DNA of 64,000 nt, taken from the sequence record ON529853.1; one strand, 5' to 3'. The position numbers and the translations under genes are program-made. This document shows, one piece after another, positions 7,669 to 56,047 of this stretch (positions within the stretch are counted from its first letter, which is position 1; the number at the start of each line of letters is the position of its first letter). Below the pieces are notes generated by a model. That model was given only the letters and a program-made list of their open reading frames with translations, had not been told where the DNA came from and did not search any database.

Positions 7669-7694
7669 GTAAAGGAACGAAATGCGGTTGTCAA
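7669..7694 (-). promoter_or_regulatory. conserved early promoter
   Basis: gtaaaggaa-N11-tgtcaa. Confidence 0.8.
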
Positions 7695-15621: not shown

Positions 15622-16152
15622 TCAGGACGGGCGAAGCTGGCTTCGCCGCGCCTCATCGATTCCCTTCGACAGGGCGTAGTTGGAATAGGCTTGGTCCCCG
15701 GTGATCTCGGCGTCGACGGCTTCGGCGAACCAGGCCGGCATGTTGATGCCGTGGTTCTCGTCCGGCAGTTCGACCTCCAGGATCATCAGGTGGCGCAGGG
15801 CGGGGTGGTCGAACATGTCGAACTCCAGCGTCAGGTCGCCGTGCGGGATCGACCAGCGCGTCTTCTCAATACAGGCGCCTTTTGTGTGGTGGATCGCCAG
15901 GTTCAGGTAGGTCATTCCGTCGATCTCGAACTCGATCTCATGACTGGCGAAGGCCGAACCTTCGACGGGCCGCTTCATCGTCAGGTGATAGCGGGGGCGG
16001 GACAGCGCGCACGAGGTCTGGCGGATGCGCGTGATCCAGTCACCGGTCCCCTGGACGTAGGCCTGGGTGATCTTCACCTTGCGCGCGGCGTCCAGGACGG
16101 ATTCCGGCGGCAGTGTCTTGAGCCGGAACCGGCGTTCGATTTCCAGGCTCAT
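15622..16152 (-). CDS. CYTH-domain protein (triphosphatase/adenylate cyclase-like)
   Basis: LEIERRF, ITQAYV, RIR, IEKTRW, LEFD, ILEVE motifs. Confidence 0.9.
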   Translation of the reverse strand: MSLEIERRFRLKTLPPESVLDAARKVKITQAYVQGTGDWITRIRQTSCALSRPRYHLTMKRPVEGSAFASHEIEFEIDGMTYLNLAIHHTKGACIEKTRWSIPHGDLTLEFDMFDHPALRHLMILEVELPDENHGINMPAWFAEAVDAEITGDQAYSNYALSKGIDEARRSQLRPS

Positions 16153-16865
16153 GCCGGTGCCCCGCCGCTGTCGACGGCTGCCTGCATCCGGCGAAGGGCC
16201 TGCGGCCGGAACGGGACTTCAGCCCGCACAACATCGCGCGCGGCGTCCGACGGCTTGAACGTCACACGGGAGCCCTGGGGCGACCAAACCGCCCGCACCG
16301 GATAGACGAGACCCGCCTGAACGGCGCCGGCGTACTCGCCGTGAATGAACGGCTCGTGGGACCCGAACTCACCGTCGCGCGCCGGCAGCAGCAAGCGGGC
16401 CACCCGCCGGTTCACCGCCATCGGCTTAAAGGCCCAACAGCCCTGCGCGGCCACTTGCCGGAAGGTGTAGACTTGGTCTGGATCACCCTCCAGGGTCTTT
16501 TCGCAGGCGTAGAGGCGCCCTTTCAGGGTCACTTCCCACACAACGTCCTGACCCTGCCCATCCTGTTCGCACGGCCGCAGGCGGCCGTCGGCGACCGCCT
16601 TCACGACCAGGGCGCGCAGCGCCGGGTCCTCATGCATCGGCGTGCGGCGCGCCTCGCCCAGCCAACTATACCGCAGGGTGTCTGCGCCGCTGTCGGCGGT
16701 GATGACCAAGGCTCCGGCGCGGGCGACCGCCGCCCACATGGCGTCGTCCTCCATCTGGGCGCTATCGGGGTCCATGCCTTGCGGCGCGGGCGCAAAGCCG
16801 GCGGCGGCCGGGAGACCGGCCAGGGCGGCGAGCGCGGTGAAGACGGTGCGTCGGTTCAGATTCAT
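16149..16865 (-). CDS. putative Tat-exported protein
   Basis: MNLNRRTVFTALAALAGLPAAAG twin-arginine signal. Confidence 0.7.
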   Translation of the reverse strand: MNLNRRTVFTALAALAGLPAAAGFAPAPQGMDPDSAQMEDDAMWAAVARAGALVITADSGADTLRYSWLGEARRTPMHEDPALRALVVKAVADGRLRPCEQDGQGQDVVWEVTLKGRLYACEKTLEGDPDQVYTFRQVAAQGCWAFKPMAVNRRVARLLLPARDGEFGSHEPFIHGEYAGAVQAGLVYPVRAVWSPQGSRVTFKPSDAARDVVRAEVPFRPQALRRMQAAVDSGGAPA

Positions 16866-16871
16866 GACGTT

Positions 16872-16944
16872 GTTCTGCCGCGTCGATTTTTCTATGTCAA
16901 CCACCACGACGGCTGTTGACAGCAATCACGGCACATGCGAGAAG
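16872..16944. promoter_or_regulatory. back-to-back divergent promoters
   Basis: Minus: TTGACA-N17-CAGAAC (16900-16872); plus: TTGACA-N17-GAGAAG (16916-16944). Confidence 0.6.
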
Positions 16945-16950
16945 GACCAC

Positions 16951-17480
16951 CTCGGCGGCGCGGTCCCAGGACAGCGTCGTCGGGCGATCTCGACCGGCAC
17001 ACGGGCTTGGGAAGATCAGAGGAATAGATGGGGAACCACAGCAGCGCCTCGGCGGGCTGCCCGATCACCGCGCTATCCTTGCGGACCCCTCAGGGGATAG
17101 GCTCTGACGCCGCAAAGATGTCGAGAGGACGGACCCTGTTGAACGGCGCTGTAACGCCGCCTCGGCCGGGAGCAAGGACGACCCGCCGCACCTTCAGGTG
17201 CGGCCTCGCCCGGACCCGTATCTACCAAGATCGTAGGTGACTAAGCGATCGCCTCCCCCGTCCGGGACATGTACCGGCCGGACCGAGAGGTATTCGCGAG
17301 GCGAGCACGCCAGGGTTACGTCACCGAATCCGGCTCACCCGCCCGGAGCGGTCTCGGGGCCGTCCGTGGTTCCCCTTATCGGGTCCGGCGTTTCGTCAGG
17401 CCGGGTTCAGGATTTATCTGCGGACAATCAGCCTCATACCCCAAACCCCCGTCGGCTCGCGCCGGCGGGGGTCTCTTCTT
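16951..17480 (+). ncRNA. candidate ~530-nt structured RNA or long leader
   Basis: Promoter upstream, terminator at 3' end, many hairpins, 10-bp long-range pairing 17030-17039/17366-17375. Confidence 0.45.
17445..17480 (+). terminator. intrinsic terminator / attenuator
   Basis: acccccgtcggc-tcgc-gccggcgggggt + ctcttctt. Confidence 0.7.
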
Positions 17481-17488
17481 GAGGCCCC

Positions 17489-17707
17489 ATGCCGTACCAG
17501 ATCAGAATCACCGCCGCCGATTGCGAAACCCTCTCGGGCCAGACAGGCCTGAAGGGCATGATCGCCGGCCTGCGGGTCATGAAGACCTGGGCTGAGACGC
17601 ACACGCCGGGATGGGCCTATATCGCAGGGCTTCAGCGGTTCCAATTCCAGACAGCGGACGACCTGGACCGGTTCGAGGCGACGTTCAAGCGCGCGCCGGA
17701 GGCCTGA
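17489..17707 (+). CDS. hypothetical protein
   Basis: GAGG RBS, 72 aa, high GC3. Confidence 0.7.
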   Translation: MPYQIRITAADCETLSGQTGLKGMIAGLRVMKTWAETHTPGWAYIAGLQRFQFQTADDLDRFEATFKRAPEA

Positions 17708-17819
17708 CGAGTCTTCAAGGCTGTCACAGGCTCAGGCCTGGAGTTGCCGGGTCTCGCAATTATCAGGCCTGATTTTCCTGACGTTTCCTGCGTCGTATCC
17801 CAACAATTTGTTAAGATCG

Positions 17820-17990
17820 CCGAGCGCGCCTCCAGGCGGACTCGCTGCGCGTGGACCTGGCGGAGGCTTCCCTGCCGCCGGGGGGGTTGGCGGGGCCTCG
17901 CGGCCGGAGCGTAATCGGGGGGCGTCATGCGCTCGCACAGGGAAGTGTCCTGCCAAGGACCCCAGGAACATGGCATAGGCGCGCGCAAAG
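17820..17990 (+). ncRNA. candidate structured RNA (multibranch)
   Basis: gcctcc/ggaggc stem; cttccctg/cagggaag closing three hairpins; no credible ORF. Confidence 0.4.
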
Positions 17991-18025
17991 GAAAAGCCCC
18001 GCCGGCGAACCGACGGGGCTTTTCC
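17990..18025 (-). terminator. intrinsic terminator (possibly bidirectional)
   Basis: Minus: ggaaaagccccgtcgg-ttcg-ccggcggggcttttcc then ttt. Confidence 0.85.
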
Positions 18026-18233
18026 ACAAGGCCTGACGACCTCGCTCGATTCCTCTTGGCCCGAAGGCTCATCCCGCTGACGCGTGGACCCCTTGCGGGG
18101 CGGGCGGACGCTATTGCCCCAAGGGGCTCAACCGATCTGTCGTCCAGAAACAGGGTGAGACCTCGGCGGCCGCACGAGGTCTCGGGCGTCCTCAAGCCGG
18201 ATTTCCGATCCTCGTACTGACCGGCTATTGAAC
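17990..18233 (-). ncRNA. candidate ~245-nt structured sRNA
   Basis: Bounded by near-consensus promoter and terminator; UUCG/GCAA tetraloops; 9-bp hairpin 18157-18183; no credible ORF. Confidence 0.6.
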
Positions 18234-18239
18234 AGGCGG

Positions 18240-18268
18240 AGTATGGCTCAGCTTGTCAGAAAAGTCAA
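18240..18268 (-). promoter_or_regulatory. sigma70-type promoter
   Basis: TTGACT-N17-CATACT; -35 contains stop of 18265..18612. Confidence 0.8.
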
Positions 18269-48635: not shown

Positions 48636-48660
48636 GTAAAGGAATGATGTGCGTTGTCAA
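48636..48660 (-). promoter_or_regulatory. conserved early promoter
   Basis: gtaaaggaa-N10-tgtcaa; -35 contains Thg1 stop. Confidence 0.8.
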
Positions 48661-49484
48661 CCCGCCGCATCGCCGTAATCGCGTTCGATCGGGTCAGCGC
48701 CCGCCATGATGAACTCGGTGCGATTGACGATGCGCTGGAGCGGCGGGACAGACAGTCGGGTCATGGAGGAGCGAACCACCGACGTGTCCTCAAGTCGCGC
48801 CGGGCGCATGGCGGCGGGGATGCGGGCGACCTCGGTCGGCGTCAGGGGCCGCTCGACCGTCTCCTTACGCACGAACGTCCCCAGGCGGAACGCCTCGGGG
48901 TAGTCGGCGAACACCACGCCCTTCTCGGCGATCATGTCGATCATCGCCTGGCGCCCCTTGCCATGCATCTGGCTCGGCGAGTATTGCGCCCGGCACGCCA
49001 TGGAGGCGGCGTTCTTCTGGCAGTCGAGGTTACGCCACAGGAACATGTTGGCGGCTTCCCACGGGTGGGGAAGCTGGCAGACGCGCGCGTCGAACGCCGG
49101 CAGGCGATCGTTGAACGGCTCCCAGTAGCGGATGGCGTGCGCCATGCGCGCGGCCGCCATCGACGCCAGCACCGAGGTCATCTTGACGATCTTGCCGGAG
49201 AAGAAGATGTCGCTCTCGTAGTCGGGCGCCTCCCACACCAGGCTGATCTCGTCGGACTGGACGTAGCCGATCTTGGCGTGGGTCTTGTCGACCAGATACT
49301 CCGCCACCACGATCATCGCCTCGGTCATGCGCGGGTCAAACGGCCGCTCCATGCCCTTGGTGAACTTGGAGAAGCCTCGGCCGTCGATGCGGGCGTAGAC
49401 CGGCAGGGACGGGAAGAAGCGGCGCGCGGTCTCGCGGCGCTCATAGTCCTTCATCCGGTCGCCGAGTTCATCCTTGGTCGTCAT
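48657..49484 (-). CDS. thg1: tRNA-His guanylyltransferase / Thg1-like 3'-5' polymerase
   Basis: RMKDYE, YARIDGRGFSKFT, YVQSDEISL, FDARV, NMFLWRNLDCQKN. Confidence 0.93.
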   Translation of the reverse strand: MTTKDELGDRMKDYERRETARRFFPSLPVYARIDGRGFSKFTKGMERPFDPRMTEAMIVVAEYLVDKTHAKIGYVQSDEISLVWEAPDYESDIFFSGKIVKMTSVLASMAAARMAHAIRYWEPFNDRLPAFDARVCQLPHPWEAANMFLWRNLDCQKNAASMACRAQYSPSQMHGKGRQAMIDMIAEKGVVFADYPEAFRLGTFVRKETVERPLTPTEVARIPAAMRPARLEDTSVVRSSMTRLSVPPLQRIVNRTEFIMAGADPIERDYGDAAG

Positions 49485-51536: not shown

Positions 51537-52691
51537 TCAGCCGCCCGGCGCCAGACGCACGCCGTCGAGCGCCGTCAACATGTCTTCGCGGTTCATGGTG
51601 TAGCCGCTCAAGGCCCAGGTCAGGCGCGCCGCCATCAGGCCGCCGCCGATCTCCTTGGGTTTGAAACCCTTCGCGACGAAATCATCCCCGTTGATGGGCA
51701 GCGCCGGAACGGGCCAGGAAGAGACTTCGGTGAAGACCTCCGGAACTCCGGTCGCGCGCGCCCAGGCCTCAGCATAGGCGGGCGAGGCTTTCTCACACGC
51801 CAGGAGGTATTTCAGGTTCTTCAGGGTCGGCGGGCCGTAAAGCCGGTTCTCCAGGAACTTCGCCAGAGCCGTCTCGGATTTCGACCACCGCCAGCGCTTG
51901 GCGATCGGCGGCCAGTTCTTGGCGAGCGCGCTCATCAGGACCACAGGATCGCGGGTGTGGGCGTGCGCGATGTCCATCCGCTCGGGCAAGACTTCGCCGG
52001 AGACCTCCAGGTGATCCAGCAGCCCCAGGCGGCGCATCTCCCGCACCATGCGCGGCCCGCTGTCGTGGGCCACCACCTTCTTCATCTCGACCCAGATGCG
52101 TTCGCCGGAAATGGCGCGCAGCCCGTGTCCGAATAGAGCGCAGGCCGCCGCCGCCGCCGGGTCAAGGCGACCGCGTCCATAACGGCCGTGGAACCGGAAG
52201 AAGCGCAGGATGCGCAGGTGGTCTTCCTCAATCCGCTCGGAGGCGTCGCCGACAAATCGAACCACGCCGGCGTCCAGATCACGCTCGCCGCCGAAGGGAT
52301 CGATCAACAACCCCTGGAAGGTCATCGCCATGGCGTTGATGGTCAGGTCGCGCCGCGCCAGGTCCTCATGCAGATCACGCGTGAAGGCGACCGTGGCGTG
52401 GCGCCCGTCGTGTTCGGTCTCGGTGCGCAGGGTGGTGATCTCATAAGGCTCCGCGCCGATCACGACCGTCAATGTGCCGAACTCGATCCCCGTGGGGTAG
52501 CAGACCAGGCCCAGGCTCCTGTAGAGGGCCTGCTGCTCGTCGGGGGTGGCGTCCGTGCACAGGTCGACGTCCTTGGGCGCTTCGCCCATCAGGGCGTCGC
52601 GCACGCAGCCGCCGACGAACCACAGGCGGTAGCCGCGATCCACGAAGGCGCGCTCGACCGCCTCCAGTTCAGGGGTGACAGGCGGGCGCAT
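51537..52691 (-). CDS. cca: class II tRNA nucleotidyltransferase (CCA-adding enzyme)
   Basis: FVGGCVRD, DVD, EITTLR, EDLARRDLTINAMA, EDHLRILRFFRF; lacks the PAP-type GRRF signature. Confidence 0.9.
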   Translation of the reverse strand: MRPPVTPELEAVERAFVDRGYRLWFVGGCVRDALMGEAPKDVDLCTDATPDEQQALYRSLGLVCYPTGIEFGTLTVVIGAEPYEITTLRTETEHDGRHATVAFTRDLHEDLARRDLTINAMAMTFQGLLIDPFGGERDLDAGVVRFVGDASERIEEDHLRILRFFRFHGRYGRGRLDPAAAAACALFGHGLRAISGERIWVEMKKVVAHDSGPRMVREMRRLGLLDHLEVSGEVLPERMDIAHAHTRDPVVLMSALAKNWPPIAKRWRWSKSETALAKFLENRLYGPPTLKNLKYLLACEKASPAYAEAWARATGVPEVFTEVSSWPVPALPINGDDFVAKGFKPKEIGGGLMAARLTWALSGYTMNREDMLTALDGVRLAPGG

Positions 52692-54825: not shown

Positions 54826-55118
54826 GGGGCAGGCTCCAGAGTGTCCATGGCTGCCCGCGTGGCGCGGCGCAGCAAGGCGGCGATGTCGGCCGCCGCACGT
54901 TCCGGGGCGTCATGCCAGGTGTCTAAGGCGGGACCTTCCAGCAGGGCTTCCAGGCGCTCCATCAGCGCCGCTGCGGTCAGGTCCCCGCCCAGACGCCGGC
55001 GCGCCAGGCCGACGGCCTCGTGCAGGGTCACGTTGGTCTGGAGCGCGCCCCGCGTCTCGGTGATGCGTCGCCAGCCGTGGGTTTCCACGATGTCGAGGGC
55101 GGCCGCGAACACACTCAT
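54822..55118 (-). CDS. DUF6197-like protein
   Basis: AALDIVETHGW...TWHDAPERAAADIAALL. Confidence 0.5.
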   Translation of the reverse strand: MSVFAAALDIVETHGWRRITETRGALQTNVTLHEAVGLARRRLGGDLTAAALMERLEALLEGPALDTWHDAPERAAADIAALLRRATRAAMDTLEPAP

Positions 55119-56047
55119 GACAGCGCCCCGAGCGCGTCCGGCGCCAGGAACATGCCGCACGACGCCTTCACGTCGAACCCCACGCGGGGTACGATGCGCG
55201 ACTGCGGGGCGTCAAAGGCCGTCGCCAGCTTGGCGGTCAGCCGGGTCAGCGTCTCTTCGTCCGGCTCCGACCCCTGGGTGGGGCTGTAGGGGTTGTACCG
55301 CACGCAGTTGAAACGGGTTTTCATGCCGCGCGCTTTGACCGCCGCGATGATCTCCTCGACCGTCTCGTCTTCGTCGTTCTGACCGGCGATGAAACTGTGA
55401 TGTAGGACGATTTCGCCCGGCGTATCGTACGACATCGCCGACTGCTGAAACTCCGCCAGCCGATCCAGCGCCCGTTCGGGGTCCATCGCCTTGGGCAACC
55501 AGCGGCGGCGGAACTGCGGCCGCATCGAGTAGAGGCTGTAGTAGAGGTTCACCGAGCGACGGCTGCGGCCAATCAGGTCCGCCAGCGGACGATCGGGCAA
55601 CGAGGCCGGCATGATGGTCGACAGATTGAAGACGGCGTCCGCGACGCCCAGCTTGAACACCTGCCGGCGCCAGATGTCGCGTTCCAGCTTCGCCAGGCCG
55701 CCGTCGAACAGGTGAGGATTGGCGAGCGGTTCGCCCCGCGCCATGAAGTTGAAGTTGATGCGGTTGGGGCGATTGACCCAGTCGGGGCTCTTGAACCAGT
55801 GCCGGATGACCTGGTCGGCCTGAGCGTAATAGTCCGCCAGCGTCGCCGGCGTCATCATCGTCTGCCCGGTCTGGGTCAGGTGGCACATGCGGCAGGCCCG
55901 GTCGCAGCCGGAATGGCTGGACAGGTAGACGATGAAATAGTCGTCCACACGGCGCACGAAGCGGCACTCGAAGGCGCCCCCGTCCTCGGTCTTGAGGATG
56001 TGGTTGACCGAGGCGTCCTGGTCCGAGATCAGGGTCTGGAAGGTCAC
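55115..56047 (-). CDS. rlmN: RlmN/Cfr-family radical SAM RNA methyltransferase-like protein
   Basis: SSHSGCDRACRMC (CxxxCxxC), NFMARGEPLAN, LYYSLYS, RYNP, C-terminal ASCGMF. Confidence 0.85.
   Translation of the reverse strand: MTFQTLISDQDASVNHILKTEDGGAFECRFVRRVDDYFIVYLSSHSGCDRACRMCHLTQTGQTMMTPATLADYYAQADQVIRHWFKSPDWVNRPNRINFNFMARGEPLANPHLFDGGLAKLERDIWRRQVFKLGVADAVFNLSTIMPASLPDRPLADLIGRSRRSVNLYYSLYSMRPQFRRRWLPKAMDPERALDRLAEFQQSAMSYDTPGEIVLHHSFIAGQNDEDETVEEIIAAVKARGMKTRFNCVRYNPYSPTQGSEPDEETLTRLTAKLATAFDAPQSRIVPRVGFDVKASCGMFLAPDALGALS

Follow-up and report, generated by a model that had tools for sequence, protein, structure and literature searches.

The question raised by this locus is whether the stretch at 16916-17488 encodes a functional RNA, a regulatory leader of the gene that follows it, or protein. 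The original prediction had described a ~530-nt structured transcript between a divergent promoter and a terminator, to be read either as a large non-coding RNA or as an attenuator/riboswitch leader controlling 17489..17707, with two coupled open reading frames as the alternative. The window, i.e. the whole stretch of 64,000 nucleotides that was analysed, is 100% identical to the genome of Brevundimonas phage vB_BpoS-Bambus (ON529853.1), and its coordinates equal those of the record minus 62000. Bambus is a 348-kb siphovirus of the Dolichocephalovirinae with B. pondensis LVF1 as the isolation host. The stretch lies within an unannotated 623-nt gap, BAMBUS_01460 to BAMBUS_01470. The giant (at least 300 kb) Brevundimonas phages have been described with 24-29 tRNAs and no tmRNA, and ncRNA genes are not mentioned in that description (PMC10070969). 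The analysis given below suggests, with high confidence, that a genuine structured ncRNA gene is present in this gap. The more specific reading, in which a ~530-nt structured non-coding RNA of an undescribed family has a stand-alone gene on the plus strand, from ~16950 to 17482, is considered likely.

The distribution of the region was elucidated by comparison with other genomes. A blastn search against phages recovered it in only seven phages, all of them giant Brevundimonas phages, even at E = 10. The whole unit occurs in the same gene context in Bambus, Marchewka, Papperlapapp, Kabachok and Domovoi (the Bambus clade), and the predicted RNA is ~490 nt long in Marchewka and ~465 nt in Papperlapapp, Kabachok and Domovoi. 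Of this unit, Kikimora and Gurke share only the promoter and the initial ~190 nt; their distance from Bambus is evident from a 579-aa protein of the window, which is only ~35% identical there. The first ~190 nt, referred to here as the core, is almost unchanged across the seven giant phages and includes uninterrupted invariant runs of 34 and 27 bases. The RNA gene of Kikimora and Gurke is located inside a ~1-kb unannotated gap, at a genomic place and in an orientation other than those of the syntenic gene block, and its neighbours are unrelated to the Bambus neighbours. When Bambus was compared with Papperlapapp, the blocks 16916-17137 and about 17229-17346 displayed 97 and 96% identity, respectively, against 91 and 88% for the flanking genes and 72-82% for the linkers between the blocks, where all insertions and deletions are found. 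The core model R1 detected exactly one copy per genome in the four genomes searched. It gave noise-level matches only in five Caulobacter jumbo phages, and none in 151 genomes of one alphaproteobacterial order, that of a Robiginitomaculum genome reached via a phage CsgG/HfaB-like gene, a set that may not include the host species. Exact-pattern scans with invariant 19-25-mers gave 0 matches in IMG/VR and in genome contigs and, in metagenomes, 0 and then one chance match in unrelated DNA; blastn against plasmids gave 0 matches. The putative RNA family has so far been seen only in the seven giant Brevundimonas phages.

Several other features were recorded around the locus. In Kikimora and Gurke, an unannotated small ORF upstream of the RNA gene would encode a hydrophobic peptide of ~31 aa, MRTLSRFLTAFAIFLALFIGVGLPILLSVSS (about 2385-2480 of the Kikimora stretch, L006), and further upstream (L006 2098-2206) a G+C-rich hairpin resembles a terminator and matches ar14 weakly (E = 0.05). 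In the Bambus window, another gap of ~560 nt without annotation lies behind the 72-aa gene, at 17708-18264; a promoter-like site on the minus strand (18268-18240) is found at this gap, and a short stretch within it (18071-18107) is 87% identical to Kikimora.

The features of the locus, in window coordinates, are as follows.

16149-16865, minus strand: BAMBUS_01460, the left flank of the gap.
16895-16900, minus strand (TGTCAA on the plus strand): TTGACA −35 box of the divergent BAMBUS_01460 promoter, read directly and kept in the five Bambus-clade phages.
16916-16944, plus strand: putative promoter of the RNA gene, with a −35 TTGACA (16916-16921), a 15-nt spacer and a −10-like GCGAGAAG (16937-16944).
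16950-17482, plus strand: whole predicted RNA of ~530 nt, from the promoter and terminator bounds and alignments A1 and A4.
16951-16984, plus strand: P1, a 5' hairpin of 11 bp, a one-nucleotide break and 3 bp, of the same architecture in both clades.
16988-16994, plus strand: UCUCGAC, 5' strand of a tentative closing helix, pairing with 17120-17126.
16994-17004, plus strand: P2, a small hairpin (CCG-GCACA-CGG), invariant in all seven phages.
17009-17027, plus strand: purine-rich tract GGGAAGAUCAGAGGAAUAG, predicted to be mostly single-stranded and identical in all seven phages.
17027-17066, plus strand: P3, a hairpin with a 5-nt bulge and a UNCG-type tetraloop cap, showing covariation and containing the ATG of the ORF at 17028.
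17067-17116, plus strand: near-invariant, pseudoknot-prone block, identical at 48 of 50 positions in the seven phages.
17120-17128, plus strand: invariant GUCGAGAGG, which ends the conserved core and would supply the 3' strand of the closing helix.
17135-17170, plus strand: Ha, a dispensable peripheral hairpin; Marchewka is without 17138-17176 (39 nt).
17177-17210, plus strand: Hb, a variable hairpin with a UUCA or UUCG cap and compensatory changes in the Bambus clade.
17211-17366, plus strand: 3' domain, a Bambus-clade-specific multi-branch fold closed by CGGACCC/GGGGCCGUCCG.
17366-17375, plus strand: GUGGUUCCCC, 3' partner of a long-range pair that is strong only in Bambus.
17379-17440, plus strand: segment of 62 nt found only in Bambus and Marchewka and missing from the other three phages of the Bambus clade.
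17445-17482, plus strand: intrinsic terminator with a 12-bp G+C-rich stem and a U-rich tail, from the terminator scan.
17489-17707, plus strand: BAMBUS_01470, 72 aa, the right flank of the gap.

The back-to-back arrangement of a plus-strand TTGACA with the minus-strand promoter, on which the original prediction was partly based, is present, with the two boxes 15 nt apart. The RNA-gene promoter has the form TTGACA-N15-G(C/G)GAGAAG, which is preserved in both clades and differs from the phage promoter consensus TTGACA-N12-TTCCTTTAC, of which ~18 copies occur in the window. It presumably resembles the Caulobacter sigma-73 type, which hints at transcription by the host polymerase, perhaps with different timing. 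Transcription of the RNA gene would start near 16950. Sites of the form GTTGACA-N12-TTCCTTTAC were also seen ahead of many genes, mostly on the minus strand, e.g. at 7694, 9408, 12721, 14403, 19424, 25665, 38366 and 48660 (all minus strand).

At the other end, the terminator stem spans 17445-17472 and is followed by CTCTTCTTGA. A terminator ahead of the ORF at 17489 had been predicted and is borne out, the stem ending 16 nt and the U-rich tail ~6-8 nt upstream of the ATG. Five phages retain it, one of its G-C pairs having become G-U. In Kikimora and Gurke, the core is followed by ~300 nt of different sequence that lead to a strong terminator (GAGGCCCGA...UCGGGCCUC, then UUUAUUUU); 3' of this RNA terminator, the TTGACA-N12-TTCCTTTAC consensus promoter precedes the next gene. 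We infer the transcription, ends and processing of the RNA from these sequence signals.

The fold of the core was derived from the comparison of the two clades. Covariation, which had been named as a check on the predicted structure, is found in P1 and P3, whose shape is kept through nine compensatory pair changes, each covarying pair being essentially one evolutionary event as there are only seven sequences in two clades. In P1, five pairs are changed on both sides, four show consistent one-sided changes and none is broken; a C-G to G-C swap distinguishes Kikimora from Gurke. In P3, all 13 pairs are kept in both clades, and four of them are changed on both sides (A-U to G-C, U-A to C-G, A-U to G-C and G-C to A-U). 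Sliding the partners by 1-3 columns reduces the pairing from 97% to about 29-48%, with the loss of nearly all double changes. P2 is invariant in the seven phages and so leaves no room for covariation. The candidate closing helix shows two one-sided changes in Kikimora and Gurke that keep G-U pairing, and no double change; it also competes with a UCUC/GGGA pairing.

The mutually exclusive pairings proposed around 17075-17120 were recognised as overlapping pairings at 17073-17115. These competing pairings are CUAUCC (17073-78) with GGAUAG (17095-100), UUGCGG (17079-84) with CCGCAA (17110-15), CCCC (17086-89) with GGGG (17093-96), and UCAGGG with CUCUGA, of which the former two are mutually compatible as a pseudoknot. 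Since the most conserved blocks never vary, this pseudoknot and the closing helix (16988-94/17120-26) are put forward as proposals. A further complementarity was observed between ACCGCGC (17068-17073) of the invariant block and GCGCGGU (16959-16965) of the P1 5' strand in six of the seven phages; it is used in the minimum-energy fold of Bambus and is broken in Gurke. This pairing may represent an alternative conformer, the local P1 hairpin being the one that displays covariation.

The strand on which the structure resides is indicated by the G-U pairs in P1, P3 and the candidate closing helix, which would be C-A mismatches on the opposite strand; the structure thus belongs to the plus strand. 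When compared with shuffled sequences, the fold of the plus strand has a z value of −2.1, against −0.19 for the minus strand, and the single-sequence z-scores are modest (−1.6 to −2.3). Compensatory helices, strand-specific G-U pairs and a promoter and terminator of their own, which are generic features of structured ncRNAs, are found at this locus, in two clades only. The purine-rich tract between P2 and P3 contains AGAGGA, the ribosome-binding site of the original prediction. An antisense role of this tract was also considered and rejected, as the same 151 genomes yielded no conserved complement with up to 2 mismatches (2 chance matches).

Beyond the core, the remaining ~300 nt constitute a second folded domain, which is different between the two clades. 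The three hairpins named in the original prediction are present in Bambus, namely cggcg-ctgtaa-cgccg at 17144-17159, ccgcacc-ttca-ggtgcgg at 17186-17203 and gtccgg..ccggac at 17260-17285. Compensatory pairs in Hb are 247-265, 248-264 and 251-261 (alignment A4), and the 3' domain, with 96% identity between Bambus and Papperlapapp, contains two more. The natural deletion of 17138-17176 in Marchewka and that of 17379-17440 in the Papperlapapp group indicate that those parts are dispensable. The model R2, built on the 3' domain, found no match in the RNA-gene stretches of Kikimora and Gurke (L006 and L007), and local alignment was no better than that of shuffles; homology of the 3' domains between the clades was rejected on these grounds. 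The invariant hairpin at 17258-17281 is nearly palindromic, R2 also matching its minus strand, and carries a palindromic loop, ACAUGU (17267-17272). This loop is a possible kissing-loop dimerisation site, in a 3' domain of the Bambus clade with no counterpart in Kikimora and Gurke.

The 10-bp long-range pair that had been proposed between ggggaaccac (GGGGAACCAC, 17030-17039) and gtggttcccc (17366-17375) is present in Bambus and exceeds chance there, but it is no conserved part of the fold. The Bambus duplex extends to 13 bp with an energy of −22.3 kcal/mol, as compared to −14.4 ± 2.0 kcal/mol for the shuffles, 0 of 300 of which reach it. In the other six phages the pair is ordinary (shuffle fractions 0.21-0.98), and its 3' partner is mismatched in Marchewka and has decayed in the remaining three phages of the Bambus clade. 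Moreover, its 5' half coincides with the lower stem and bulge of P3, which is itself supported by covariation. The long-range pair is regarded as lineage-specific and, at best, as forming an alternative conformer of the Bambus and Marchewka RNAs.

Comparison with known RNAs revealed no described family. Rfam 15 (4227 models) gave no match in the whole window at gathering thresholds, and with permissive thresholds the only matches within 16900-17500 were those on the terminator hairpin (E 1.3-3.7), so that the Rfam check suggested earlier turned up no described family at either setting; nothing relevant was found in Kikimora. tmRNA combines a tRNA-like acceptor and T-arm domain with a tag reading frame, and needs SmpB. 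The two-piece alphaproteobacterial form is comparable to the present RNA as a large pseudoknotted RNA, and in Bambus a GGGG... pairs with a far-downstream ...CCCC; however, this pairing is not conserved, and there is no conserved tag frame in the alignments. ARAGORN detected no tRNA or tmRNA at the RNA gene, and SmpB is absent in Bambus and Kikimora. tmRNA, including the two-piece alpha form, was rejected in view of the negative ARAGORN and Rfam results and the missing SmpB. A retron or DGR RNA was likewise rejected, the phage being without reverse transcriptase.

GOLLD and ROOL are large ornate RNAs often found on phages and prophages (bioRxiv 10.1101/2024.12.08.627333). The RNA described here is similar to them in being a stand-alone, non-coding phage RNA of at least 0.5 kb with many hairpins and conserved blocks between variable helices. 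It differs in that their covariance models remain unmatched (no match with E up to 1-10), the RNA gene is not beside tRNA genes, and its occurrence is limited to seven phages of one host genus. As regards multimer formation, the only hint in the Bambus RNA is the palindromic ACAUGU loop, which is missing in Kikimora and Gurke.

YrlA and other Y RNAs are ~100 nt long, lie by rsr, and possess a Ro-binding stem formed from both ends and a tRNA-like module. Together with Ro60 (Rsr) they provide a parallel as structured, protein-bound RNAs, and these phages encode a TROVE/Ro60 protein. The Bambus RNA, however, is four to five times longer, and the phage rsr gene, at 215-216 kb of ON529853.1, is ~137 kb away; no tRNA-like or skipping-rope module was found in the RNA gene. 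The locus being without a YrlA match, assignment to the Y RNAs was rejected. The TROVE/Ro60 (Rsr)-like protein itself, with an open frame of 463-489 aa, is encoded in both clades. Just upstream of rsr there are one or two sub-threshold YrlA-like Rfam matches (38.8 and 32.6 bits, E = 1e-5 to 7e-4), the Ro60/YrlA loci being 215650-216330 on the minus strand of ON529853.1 (L029, L030) and 157559-158167 of the Kikimora record (L028, L031). By its sequence, this looks like a phage-borne Ro60 and Y RNA pair.

Among the other explanations of the locus, two coupled small protein genes (17028-17240 and 17237-17482) would account for the AGAGGA placed 7 nt upstream of the ATG at 17028 and for both frames being open in Bambus. 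The relatives do not keep these frames, as the former ORF is cut short by a stop in Kabachok and Domovoi and shifted in frame in Marchewka and Papperlapapp, and the latter contains a stop in Marchewka. Variable sites per codon position number 13/8/6 and 5/4/5, respectively, without the third-position excess of the real 72-aa gene (9/3/22). The ATG at 17028 is part of P3; Kikimora and Gurke have GCT instead, and their partner strand is altered so as to compensate. All six frames are stopped within the core in every phage checked. The alignments refute the two ORFs as genes and leave this explanation next to no probability. GURKE_00600 (L007 1987-2598, minus strand), a 204-aa hypothetical protein, overlaps the RNA promoter and the 5' part of the RNA in Gurke; its equivalent in Kikimora contains 2-5 stops in every register, which makes the annotation probably spurious. 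A cis-acting leader, in which the RNA senses a ligand, a protein or a tRNA and sets terminator passage into the 72-aa gene, draws on different evidence. BAMBUS_01470 is a real gene by its codon-position pattern; it has an SD-like GAGG and no recognisable promoter of its own, and is thus probably expressed by read-through of the moderately U-rich terminator. Its product gave no lead in Pfam, PHROG and Atlas, and the AlphaFold model is weak (pLDDT 68). The terminator directly before this promoterless gene in the Bambus clade, the folded conserved core and its competing pairings, which look like a binding pocket, all recall riboswitch and attenuator leaders. The link to the downstream gene, however, is not conserved: Kikimora and Gurke carry the core among unrelated neighbours and are without the 72-aa gene, which indicates that the RNA is not the dedicated leader of that gene. 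In these phages a strong terminator closes the RNA, and the unrelated next gene is served by a consensus promoter of its own, suggesting that the conserved unit is the RNA itself. Furthermore, no expression platform adjoins the sensor, as ~300 nt of clade-specific structure lie between the end of the core (17128) and the start of the terminator (17445), unlike known riboswitches, and no Rfam riboswitch or leader model and no known aptamer class is matched. As a general explanation, the attenuator/riboswitch leader is not supported, and a leader function of the RNA is judged improbable.

As no homology is detectable between the 3' domains of the two clades, the transcript could be a precursor of two RNAs, which self-cleavage or host nucleases would divide into the ~190-nt core and a 3' RNA of its own, a ribozyme core being one possibility. 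A 5' core common to both clades alongside unrelated 3' domains would reflect independent evolution of the two parts, and ribozyme and ribonucleoprotein cores show a conservation similar to that of the invariant, pseudoknot-prone core. Nevertheless, the self-cleaving ribozyme families gave no match with E up to 10, and there is no internal terminator or promoter, so that such a precursor is unlikely. An element acting at the DNA level, such as an origin of replication from which a primer is transcribed, a site of recombination or an array of single-strand DNA hairpins, is compatible with a non-coding unit that has a promoter and many hairpins and lies in different places in the two clades, and a small local dip of the cumulative GC skew occurs near 17.5 kb. 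Against it stand the G-U pairs, which mark a plus-strand-specific structure, and the intrinsic terminator at the end of the unit; in addition, neither an AT-rich unwinding stretch nor a window-wide skew minimum is found at the RNA gene, and inspection of the sequence and the alignments showed no repeats or iterons. This makes a DNA-level element highly improbable.

The large non-coding RNA of the original prediction is supported by its conservation in seven phages, the nine compensatory changes, its own promoter and terminator and the lack of a conserved frame. For this RNA, a trans-acting mechanism based on the binding of a partner is proposed tentatively. It is suggested by a core that is portable between gene contexts together with its promoter and far more conserved than the 579-aa protein compared, and by an invariance that covers the competing pairings and stretches predicted to be single-stranded, as is seen in binding or active sites. 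The invariant core would present the contact surface for a conserved partner of the host or the phage, most likely a protein or an RNA-processing machine, and would serve as a scaffold, decoy or cofactor. The clade-specific 3' domain would add stability or accessory contacts, and in the Bambus clade partial read-through of the terminator would also express the 72-aa gene. The position of the Bambus-clade terminator right before a promoterless real gene speaks against a purely trans reading, since it fits a cis role too, and nothing in the neighbourhood points to such a partner.

RNA-handling genes were also noted elsewhere in the window, all on the minus strand. A PolyA_pol head-domain protein of the nucleotidyltransferase family is encoded at 51537-52691, a Thg1-like guanylyltransferase at 48657-49484, a protein with a weak, RlmN/Cfr-like radical-SAM match at 55115-56047, and a CYTH-domain protein, which adjoins the RNA gene, at 15622-16152. 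The richness of the phage in such genes, including Ro60, makes a role in RNA metabolism plausible and does not demonstrate it.

These results imply a correction of the annotation, in that 17028-17240 and 17237-17482 are not to be read as genes and GURKE_00600 is probably spurious. The locus also offers a small and clean test case, as both the phages and the host are cultivable, the RNA gene is single-copy, and natural variants already mark the dispensable hairpins. Large structured RNAs of bacteria and phages without an assigned function are rare, and earlier examples proved to be ribozymes, the cores of ribonucleoproteins or assemblies of RNA alone. In a more far-reaching and rather doubtful reading, the invariant, pseudoknot-prone core of ~190 nt would form the active centre of a new class of giant-phage RNA, possibly a ribozyme or the RNA subunit of a phage ribonucleoprotein, which would act along with the phage RNA-handling proteins (Ro60, the PolyA_pol/nucleotidyltransferase-family enzyme and the Thg1-like enzyme) in taking over or protecting the RNA metabolism of the host.
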